A stretch of DNA of 64,000 bases from Octopus sinensis (taxonomy: Eukaryota), in NCBI RefSeq assembly GCF_006345805.1, contig NC_043006.1:63612001-63676000 (forward strand), given 5' to 3'. Under the pieces are notes generated by a model. It worked only from the letters and a program-made list of their open reading frames with translations, was not told where the DNA came from and ran no database searches. Position 1 is the stretch's first letter, and each line of letters opens with the position of its first letter. Shown piece by piece: positions 44,201 through 47,200 of this stretch. The translations under genes and the position numbers were made by a program.

Positions 44201-47200
44201 GTGGATTTGGTAGACGGAAACTGAAAGAAGCCTGTCGTATAGATGTATATATATGTATATGTATGTGTGTGTATATGTTTGTGTGTCTGTGTTTGTCCCC
44301 CTAGCATTGCTTGACAACCGATGCTGGTGTGTTTACGTCCCCGTCACCTAGCGGTTCAGCAAAAGAGACCAATAGAATAAGTACTGGGCTTACAAAGAAC
44401 AAGTCCCGGAGTCGATTTGCTCGACTAAAGGCGGTGCTCCAGCATGGCCACAGTCAAATGACTGAAACAAGTAAAAGAGAGAGAGAGAGAGAGTGATCCA
44501 GCTGTTATGTCGCTTCTGGACGTCTGTCACATTGGACCCTGAAACAGGGTTCCAGCAGCCATAGCAGACAATTCTCATCTGTCAACGATATAAATACGAG
44601 TGCTTCTATGCACGACGAATCAATGCGAGAGGTTCCCTCGTGGTAAATAAGGCAGTATTCCGTCTTCTAACACAACATCCACGCTAAGTTGGACATAGAG
44701 ACTAACTACCATTTGGTATTAACACTACTCCAGTCTCGTATATAAAACTTCGATCTGGTGAAATTATAGAAGCAGTTAACCGACAAAAAAATCTTCCTCT
44801 GGGGTATATAAAACCCGTACAGGAAGTCTTCCTCTACTCATAGCAAGGATAATCTCAACTAATTGAATTTTTTTTATCTCAATATCTTACAAATATGAGT
44901 TTCATGACGACAAACGCAATAATTTTAAATAAGAGTAGTCTCCCTTGCATCATTTAATTTCTTTATCAATTTTTGCGGGTGTGAAAAGTAACGTCTTTCT
45001 TTTTCTTTTATTTTCTCTCTTATGGTGCGATAAAAATTTTGAATGATTATTTTTGTTGTTGTAGTTGCTGTTTGATAGATCTTTGATTAATTGTGTCTCA
45101 GATCACATTATCCCTCCTGGTCTTCCTTGAATGCACATCAAATATAATGCTTATTTTTTATTCACGTTGGTTTGAAGAAATTATGCATTGTTCTGTAGCT
45201 TGTTATTGTTTATTTAGAATGACATTGTAGGGGTAGTGTGAGAAGCCAGATCAGATAGAATATTTGGGTCAGAAATGATCAGTTTAATGGAGATTAGTTT
45301 GCGCTTGTAGCAGGTTGAACGACAACACAGAAGCCGGCGAAGTTTCGCTTGTCGTAGCACAACTTTTCCGTCGATTTCCGTAAAAAACTTTTATTTTTTT
45401 ACATAAGTAATGAGAGCGAAAGAGACTAAGAGGAAGCGATTTTATGACGAGGGAAGTTTGTCTTTGAAGTTACCGTCTAGGGGAAGCATTGATGTACATG
45501 TGTGTGTGTGTGTGTGTTTGATGGGGTGTGGGAGACAGTATGTTGTGTAAGTGAAGTCCTTCTGTTAGTGTGTGTGAAGAGACAGAGAGAGTAATGTGTG
45601 AAAGAGAGAGATAACTGAAATTTTTTACCCGGTGTGTGTGTATATGTATGTATGTATGTGTGTGTGTGTGTATGTATCTATGTATGTGTGTGTGTAAGTA
45701 TGTGTGTGTATGTATGTATGGCCGATTCATCGTAATTACGATGAATCGGCCATACATACTTACACACACACATACATAGATACATACACACACACACACA
45801 TACATACATACATATACACACACACCGAGTAAAAAATTTCAGTTATCTCTCTCTTTCACACATTACTCTCTCTGTCTCTTCACACACACTAACAGAAGGA
45901 CTTCACTTACACAACATACTGTCTCCCACACCCCATCAAACACACACACACACACACATGTACATCAATGCTTCCCCTAGACGGTAACTTCAAAGACAAA
46001 CTTCCCTCGTCATAAAATCGCTTCCTCTTAGTCTCTTTCGCTCTCATTACTTATGTAAAAAAATAAGTTTTTTACGGAAATCGACGGAAAAGTTGTGCTA
46101 CGACAAGCGAAACTTCGCCCAGAAGCCTTGTCATCTCCCGCTATTTATCTCCCGTCGTTATCTCTTGATAATGTTTAACTGCCAAAATAACAACATCCAG
46201 TTTCTCTTTTATCTTCTAAAAAGTATTGGTGTAGATGGGTGAGGTCAAGTGGTTCTTTCTATACACTTTTTGTGTTTCTCCGTCGACCAACAGACATGTC
46301 GAAATTATCGAAGGACAACTAGTGATTTCGTAACCGAAAAATATTTCCAAAGGCAGCGAGCTGGCAGAAACGTTAGCACTCCGGGCGAAATGCTTTGCGA
46401 TATTTCGTCTGTCTTTACGTTCTGAGTCGAGGTTGACTTTGCTTTTTATCCTTTCGGGGTCGATAAATTAAGTACCAGTTGTGTACTGAGGTCGATCTAA
46501 TCGACTGGCCCCTTCAGCCAAAATTTCGGGCCTTGTGCCTTGAGTAGAAAAGAGTTACGTCCGTCTCAAAAAGAAGAAGCGAATACGTGGAAGTAGAGAG
46601 GACTATTTAGCCCTGCAAGACACAAAGAGATCTCTGTAGTGACGGTGAAGTGGCGCAGCTTGAGTAAGTGACGCTCGGGGCAGCCCTTGAGTTTTCGCCC
46701 CCACCCAGAACACGTCTCTGGCACATGCTATAGTCACAGATATGGGTGTTTGATAAGAAGTCTTCTTCCCAACTATATGGTTCTGGGTTCAGTCCCATTG
46801 TATGGCATCTTGGGCATGTGTATTCTACCATAGTTTTGGGCTGACCAAAGTCTTGAGTGTGGATTTGGTAGATGGAAACAGTATGGTAGCCTGCCATATG
46901 TGTGTGTGTGTGTTCTTGTTATGACATTATGCCATAGTTGTAAACGAGTATCACCATCATACAAGCAGTGTCATTCATTTCCAGTCTTCCATGTGTGCCC
47001 ATGGGGAAGCATTATCTTGTTTGGATACACGAAAGGCATCCAGCTGTAGAAAAAATTCTCCAAATAGACTCTGTCTGATCCATACAAGATCACTTTCATG
47101 GACAGTATTAGAATCTCTGAAGATGAGAGAACCAACCTGTGCAGCCTTTTGTAAATTGTGGCAGAAAGAAGAATGAGATTTGCAGATCATATTTTCCTGA

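Follow-up and report, generated by a model that had tools for sequence, protein, structure and literature searches.

A 784-bp loop-less palindrome in a RECK intron of Octopus sinensis as a probable fold-back member of an Octopus Merlin family

Introduction

Merlin transposons have a terminal 5'-GG, terminal inverted repeats (TIRs) of 24-462 bp and target site duplications (TSDs) of 8-9 bp, and about 200 DDE_Tnp_IS1595 proteins of Octopus are listed in the supplement of the same study (PMC8101967). Cephalopods are almost the only molluscs that carry Merlin (PMC10294476). TSD length and GG start are together insufficient for the Merlin label, because animal MULEs have both (PMC5225508). Here we analyzed a stretch of 64,000 nucleotides of Octopus sinensis (RefSeq assembly GCF_006345805.1, contig NC_043006.1, positions 63,612,001 to 63,676,000, forward strand; this whole stretch is "the window" below, numbered from its first letter), in which a 784-bp palindrome lies in an intron of a homologue of the gene RECK. 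A sequence-only reading of the window had described the palindrome as a real insertion with an 8-bp TSD and Merlin-like termini, made entirely of TIR and expected to form long double-stranded RNA (dsRNA) in the RECK pre-mRNA. On the evidence of sequence comparison, we put at roughly 90% the probability that the element belongs to a Merlin (IS1595-like DDE) family of Octopus, as a fold-back member that is non-autonomous and would have entered the RECK intron by cut-and-paste insertion. Such an insertion is of a known kind; the locus is a clear example of it and is unsurprising to a transposon specialist.

Results

A bounded palindrome flanked by an 8-bp duplication

Sequence reading and a repeat search placed the palindrome at window positions 45336-46119 (784 bp). 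Its left arm (45336-45735, plus strand, 400 bp) and its right arm (45736-46119, minus strand, 384 bp), the reverse complement of the left, meet with zero spacer at ...GGCCGATTCATCGTAA|TTACGATGAATCGGCC..., and the 32-bp palindromic core GGCCGATTCATCGTAA|TTACGATGAATCGGCC (45720-45751) is unique, with the symmetry axis falling within an AATT at 45734-45737. Global alignment of arm against arm gave 383 matches, 1 mismatch and 16 gap columns. The sole substitution is a C/T difference at arm position 294; one indel is a 2-bp TT in a T-rich run (arm positions 54-55), and the other is 14 bp within a (GT/GTAT)n tract near the palindrome centre.

Identical copies of CAGAAGCC stand at 45328-45335 and 46120-46127, directly outside the two arms. 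This direct repeat is exactly 8 bp and no extension is possible on either side; by our own calculation from the local base composition, the chance of a match at all eight positions of these fixed junctions is about 2e-5. The sequences beyond the two ends differ from each other and each is unique within the window for about 200 bp, so the palindrome is bounded and is not an open-ended fold-back. No paralogous empty site was found in the window.

Both ends of the element start with GGCGAAG. The terminal motif GGCGAAGTTTCGCTTGTCGTAGCACAACTTTTCCGTCGATTTCC (45336-45379, plus strand; mirrored at 46076-46119, minus strand) is conserved across the family ends described below and is likely to be the end recognized by a transposase. 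Positions 2-13 of the terminus (GCGAA-GT-TTCGC) form a short imperfect palindrome, and the 25-nt terminus occurs twice in the 64-kb window, both times at the element ends (0 expected from shuffles). Tandem repeats detected in the arms by Tandem Repeats Finder (TRF) are microsatellites only, with none of the 9-15-bp subterminal kind: a (GT)n/(GTAT)n block at 45632-45720 in the left arm (plus strand; mirror at 45751-45825), which holds the 14-bp length difference between the arms, and a (TG)9.5 block at 45499-45517 (mirror at 45940-45958). The open reading frames (ORFs) inside the element are short or microsatellite-derived and none encodes a plausible protein; the element lacks a DDE transposase of its own and is therefore a non-autonomous member. 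With its 784 bp made up wholly of inverted repeat, its 8-bp TSD and its lack of a credible ORF, it has the features of the MITE (miniature inverted-repeat transposable element)/fold-back class.

Homology to transposase-bearing Merlin elements

The Octopus DDE_Tnp_IS1595 protein KOF79200.1 (supplement of PMC8101967) was used as query in a protein search, and the DNA around the Octopus matches was retrieved. Three full-length elements of about 8.7 kb with 350-bp TIRs were obtained, two from O. sinensis (L002, CM016860.1:154.555-154.568 Mb, element at L002:266-8986; L004, CM016861.1, element at L004:253-8988) and one from O. vulgaris (L003, OX597829.1, element up to L003 position 8938), together with a non-coding sister MITE of 470 bp in O. 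sinensis (L005, VCDQ01004827.1, L005:6779-7248). All three full-length elements encode P0176, an intact ORF of 305 aa that is identical at the three loci, matches Pfam DDE_Tnp_IS1595 (PF12762, E = 4.1e-21) and is their only transposase ORF; none of the other 119 Merlin matches of the search is more than 56% identical to it. L002 and L004 come from different chromosomes yet share 99.6% identity across 8.7 kb, which indicates recent mobility.

The focal arms are about 96% identical, at aligned bases, to both ends of these ~8.7-kb elements. Arm positions 1-135 match L002:266-398 (88%) and L002:8981-8854 (91%), positions 184-297 match both L002 ends at 92-93%, and global alignment of the whole 400-nt arm gave 344 matches and 15 mismatches against the right end of the full element and 338 matches and 14 mismatches against its left end. 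The microsatellites of the focal arms are also present in the L002 TIRs, and the L005 MITE is 94% identical to the focal arm. TSDs of the full-length copies are perfect and 8 bp long (GCAAATCT/GCAAATCT at L002, CAAGGCTT/CAAGGCTT at L004), and that of the L005 MITE, also 8 bp, agrees at 7 of its 8 positions (CAAAAGAG/CAGAAGAG). The family comprises 5 copies at 5 loci with different flanks, and GGC, GTTTCG, TGT.GTAG and TTTCCGTCGATTTCC are invariant across 9 ends of these 5 copies.

Judged by the published definition of Merlin (PMC8101967), which asks for a TSD of 8 or 9 bp, the focal element and three of its relatives qualify with 8 bp, every one of the 9 family ends starts with GGC and so carries the terminal 5'-GG, and the whole length of the arms can be aligned to TIRs from L002, L003 and L004, elements that encode DDE_Tnp_IS1595. 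The Merlin label is now supported by homology to transposase-bearing elements and no longer by TSD length alone. The insertion with its perfect 8-bp TSD, seen by reading and by alignment alike, and the Merlin-like nature proposed in the sequence-only reading are in this way borne out; sister copies and a Merlin transposase sharing the termini, which it had suggested looking for, are represented by the three P0176-encoding elements and the L005 MITE. The consensus GGNRM, which it had given for Merlin termini, was not found in the literature searched, and L002 departs from it at its right end (GGCAT).

Within the window, a blastn search with the arm and a pattern search with the terminus for sister copies gave microsatellite matches only, and no other fragments of the full-length Merlin element were found. 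No DDE transposase was detected by Pfam among the 116 long ORFs of the window, so there is no nearby autonomous partner. Exact scans for the 22-nt terminus and for a conserved 23-mer had no match in metagenome, prokaryote-genome and viral contigs, collections apparently without octopus DNA.

Several further features of the relatives were observed. The TSDs of the family (CAGAAGCC, CAAAAGAG/CAGAAGAG, CAAGGCTT and GCAAATCT) are alike and hint at a weak target preference of CA(A/G)A type, five sites being too few to judge. The full-length copies L002, L004 and L003 are unusually long (~8.7 kb) and carry a nested long interspersed nuclear element (LINE), which in L002 lies on the minus strand at about 2.0-5.13 kb, matches RVT_1 (E = 4.4e-31) and the endonuclease Exo_endo_phos, and stands inside a 344-bp internal inverted repeat (L002 638-981 / 5412-5755, 99%). 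Because the copies occupy different loci with different TSDs at 99.6% identity, the Merlin and LINE composite seems to have transposed with its passenger. The L005 MITE is located 68 bp downstream of a partial ORF (L005:6001-6711) of another Merlin family, P0115, which is less than 46% identical to P0176; this adjacency may be nesting, clustering or coincidence.

Origin of the palindrome

In the full-length element, left and right TIR agree as far as ...TATGGCCGA, after which the right end alone continues with TTCATCGTAA. Both focal arms end in this same 10-nt TTCATCGTAA, which in L002 is confined to the right end, downstream of the transposase gene. The description of the element as all TIR is nearly right: in each 400-nt arm, about 390 nt correspond to TIR, and the innermost 10 nt are peculiar to the full element's right end. 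The parent right end reads ...CATCGTAATTTTTTAC..., the half-core matches only L002:8614-8632, and, since the parent reads CGTAATTTTTT, the axis of symmetry lies in an AATT that was already there. Both focal arms also carry a segment of about 30 bp (positions ~138-170) that is missing from the sampled relatives. These observations suggest, with moderate confidence, that the palindrome is an inverted duplication of one (right) transposon end, joined at the 4-bp palindromic microhomology AATT.

Such a duplication could have been caused by template switching, or by annealing of the nascent strand during replication or post-excision gap repair, and would have given two identical ends usable by the transposase. 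The family transposase, supplied in trans, would then bind the conserved termini (GGC..GTTTCG..TGT.GTAG...TTTCCGTCGATTTCC) and cut the target with an 8-nt stagger, and repair would leave CAGAAGCC on either side. The RECK intron before insertion is predicted to have read ...GACAACACAGAAGCCTTGTCATC... with a single CAGAAGCC. The insertion appears to be recent, given its intact TSD and an identity of 99.7% between the arms.

The palindrome might instead be attributable to two events, either head-to-head one-ended insertions or an ordinary two-TIR MITE that was made palindromic in situ after insertion. Rearrangement or gene conversion between long inverted repeats is generally plausible, the palindromic form is known from one copy only, and the L005 MITE demonstrates that non-palindromic derivatives of the family exist. 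However, there is neither an internal TSD nor filler at the axis, the join is exact on the parental AATT, one 8-bp TSD brackets the entire structure, and independent insertions with mirror-image breakpoints are very unlikely, so that we consider a history of two events improbable, in-situ symmetrisation less so than two insertions.

Predicted hairpin in the RECK transcript

RNA in the RECK sense is predicted to fold as one hairpin of about 382 bp (-718 kcal/mol, z = -50 against dinucleotide shuffles), and the DNA fold of the palindrome gave -478 kcal/mol (z = -64 against dinucleotide shuffles). The predicted hairpin is near-perfect, with one G·U pair, which comes from the single arm substitution, and two bulges. 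When transcribed, the RECK pre-mRNA intron is accordingly modelled as carrying a ~382-bp hairpin, which agrees with the long dsRNA that the sequence-only reading had expected. Coleoid cephalopods are known for heavy RNA editing, and the hairpin could be considered as a selected hairpin RNA (hpRNA) or microRNA (miRNA)-like gene, or as an ADAR-recruiting element, regulating RECK. In C. elegans, palindromic DNA-transposon repeats give Dicer-dependent small interfering RNAs (siRNAs) and overlap with ADAR-edited regions (PMC11694761), which together with the predicted fold speaks for this possibility. Against it, the Rfam scan of the whole window gave no match, and the sequence is plain TIR and microsatellite that is common to transposon copies elsewhere. 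An argument from conservation is unavailable because the insertion looks young, and we judge a selected hairpin very unlikely.

Assembly artefact and other superfamilies

Missed-adapter or fold-back reads are known to yield perfect long palindromes, and the structure could in principle be a chimeric fold-back long read, or else a hairpin MITE of shorter, 470-bp L005 type that was mis-assembled. Differences between the arms had been offered as an argument for a real insertion and against a read fold-back. The insertion itself stands, yet this argument is weak alone, because two of the three differences sit in error-prone contexts, a homopolymer-like T-run and a microsatellite. Exact-protein look-ups of the ORF spanning the palindrome centre and of a LINE ORF found neither on record and so gave no second assembly of the locus. 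The case is carried by the bounded palindrome with distinct unique sequence on either side, by the match to the family, and by the exact 8-bp duplication of family-typical length, since a fold-back read would make no TSD; the arms also hold an independent substitution besides the 14-bp length difference. On this evidence an artefact is highly improbable, and a genuine Merlin insertion is preferred.

The TSD length is shared with other superfamilies, as hAT, P, Zisupton and Novosib elements also make 8-bp TSDs; hAT has TSDs of the form nTnnnnAn and termini YARNG, and P has termini CANRG. By these criteria, hAT was rejected for the focal element (positions 2 and 7 of CAGAAGCC are A and C, and the termini read GGCGA), and the termini are likewise unlike those of P, which was rejected on the homology to Merlin-bearing elements. 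MULE Foldback elements of type 2, such as Aedes Muta1, were rejected because the arms contain microsatellites only and the relatives encode DDE_Tnp_IS1595. Although animal MULEs ("type-2 Foldback") have 8-9-bp TSDs, TIRs above 100 bp and a short imperfect palindromic terminal motif (PMC5225508) to which the GCGAA-GT-TTCGC of the focal terminus is comparable, every mollusc studied has MULE and hAT, cephalopods have Zisupton and Novosib (PMC10294476), and Galileo of the P superfamily is foldback-like with 7-8-bp TSDs (PMC4168063), a fold-back or MITE of any of these superfamilies is hardly credible here, given that the arms are homologous from end to end to TIRs of elements whose only transposase ORF is DDE_Tnp_IS1595 and that the 9-15-bp subterminal tandem repeats of Muta type are absent.

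The host gene RECK

The element sits in an intron of the RECK homologue, which is on the minus strand, with matching exons on both sides, as the sequence-only reading had proposed. ORF fragments of the minus strand match human RECK (PDB 8tzp_C) with E = 1.5e-33, and their Pfam matches are FZ_RECK (E = 1.2e-25), CC4_RECK and Kazal_2. Upstream of the element in transcript order, exons aligned to human RECK residues 342-405 (54282-54461), 487-526 (48664-48783) and 526-577 (47606-47746), the last being the nearest upstream coding exon at about 1.5 kb from the element. On the other side, a candidate exon of 20 residues was picked by eye at 43081-43140, about 2.2 kb from the element, for which phmmer gave no alignment. 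The next exon confirmed by alignment beyond the element covers residues 625-656 (41853-41933) and is followed by those for residues 657-685 (40525-40614), 715-751 (37961-38050) and 754-794 (35993-36115, the Kazal exon), all of these exons being on the minus strand. A protein search with the RECK exons obtained distant Logan fragments only, none above 69% identity, and an Octopus RECK protein was not among them. A 38-bp minisatellite (8.9 copies, 97%) lies some 50 bp away from the Kazal exon and makes long spurious ORFs entering the exon.

Other repeats in the window

Hairpin-shaped, MITE-like inverted repeats were also detected at 59602-59953, ~37560-37770, 59095-59276, 38871-39036 and 3413-3585, the best of which has arms of 176 and 157 bp with 89% identity and a 19-nt loop. 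Their termini are unrelated to those of the focal element, and none is as long or as perfect. Judging from these hairpins of the window, palindromic non-coding elements are common in this genome.

Mariner relics lie at 34848-35086, 17608-18090 and 11511-12346, none of them significant in Pfam. One relic is an internal deletion, TA|TTGGGTTGGTGCATAATTATTGC...GCAATAATTATGCACCAACTCAG|TA, which retains the end of the transposase ORF; another has a mariner-like C-terminal ORF of 120 aa (17666-18028) between 60-bp inverted repeats; and the ORFs at 11.5-12.35 kb look mariner-like. A SINE-like (short interspersed nuclear element) family of about 400 bp has at least a dozen copies in the window (44081-44491, 59955-60365, 42234-42636, 50288-50663, 61218-61601, 1686-2065 and others), which are 75-86% identical to an O. 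vulgaris copy (L001:1150-1535) and yield a recurring spurious ORF motif of 31 residues. The window and an O. vulgaris chromosome sample share this family and other repeats at 75-92% identity.

A LINE fragment at 3632-4616 (minus strand) contains the C-terminal region of a reverse transcriptase (ORF at 3819-4616) and a PHD-like zinc finger. In protein comparison its identity is 83% with O. vulgaris and 67-87% with O. bimaculoides, where the reverse-transcriptase ORF has its best named relatives; these matches, like the repeats shared with O. vulgaris, point to an octopus host. The best Logan matches to an abundant octopus LINE are about 50% identical. Young tandem duplications of 495 bp x 2.1 (99%) and 137 bp x 2.1 (100%) were found, together with the 38-bp minisatellite near the Kazal exon, at 50803-51828, 41477-41765 and 36168-36507.

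Discussion

Several points weigh against the assignment and its details. The palindromic variant is a single known copy, with none other in the 64-kb window. Over the first 30 nt, about 10% of positions separate the focal termini from those of the transposase-bearing copies, for which reason the master of the focal element was probably of another subfamily, closer to the L005 MITE. From the sequences compared, this subfamily probably has termini GGCGA(A/T)GTTTCGCTTGTCGTAGCAC, and the master itself is not among the copies recovered. The case for an origin from the right end alone depends on 10 nt, for which a single full-length subfamily served as comparison, and longer TIRs in the master would weaken it. 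The hairpin itself is a predicted fold.

With the Merlin assignment, the identity of a puzzling 784-bp palindrome is fixed for annotation, and an apparently recently active Octopus Merlin family is documented, in which three loci of two species share one and the same transposase, TSDs are intact and MITEs have been derived. The locus would also be a clean example of how one end of a transposon can give rise to a fold-back element through a palindromic microhomology of 4 bp. Palindromes that lack a loop are fragile and resist assembly and cloning. They may also supply long dsRNA from introns in an animal whose A-to-I editing is extensive, so that editing clusters or endo-siRNAs could sensibly be sought at this locus and across the family. 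A far more speculative idea, which we consider unlikely, is that the fold-back form is no isolated case but itself an actively amplifying Merlin sub-family in octopus, each intronic copy of which would bring a perfect dsRNA of ~380 bp into neural pre-mRNAs such as that of RECK and so recruit ADAR or Dicer. If this were true, identical optimal ends might let the fold-back form spread efficiently through genes, and transposon activity would be linked to the unusually heavy RNA editing of coleoids.

Among known systems, the Merlin MITEs (Feschotte 2004, as summarised in PMC8101967) resemble the focal element in the 5'-GG, TIRs of up to 462 bp, 8-9-bp TSDs and mobilisation in trans. Drosophila Foldback, Galileo and Aedes Muta1 are similar in having long inverted repeats, little or no interior and cut-and-paste transposition with TSDs, but they belong to MULE (8-9-bp TSD, 9-15-bp subterminal tandem repeats) or P (7-bp TSD). 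C. elegans PAL8A, a palindromic repeat with an 8-bp TSD that may belong to Merlin, serves as a lead only. Repeats of the PAL8A type are hairpin-forming DNA-transposon relics giving siRNAs (PMC11694761), in another phylum and with no sequence similarity to the focal element.

Within Octopus, the L005 MITE has the closest termini (GGCGATGTTTCGCTTGTCGTAGCAC) and shares with the focal element the 94% arm identity, the non-coding sequence and the 8-bp TSD (7/8). Unlike the focal element, it is not a palindrome; it looks like the product of an asymmetric internal deletion near a GTAAAAAA microhomology, in which some 85 bp from the left end are joined to some 385 bp from the right. The P0176 family (L002-L004) has the same termini (GGC..GTTTCG..TGT.GTAG...TTTCCGTCGATTTCCGTAAAAAA), the same TIR interior with microsatellites and 8-bp TSDs. 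Its members are about 8.7 kb long, with TIRs about 8 kb apart that enclose the 305-aa ORF and the nested LINE, whereas the focal element has 784 bp, no ORF and no spacer, and apparently consists of two copies of the right end with an extra segment of about 30 bp and a difference of about 10% in the first 30 nt.

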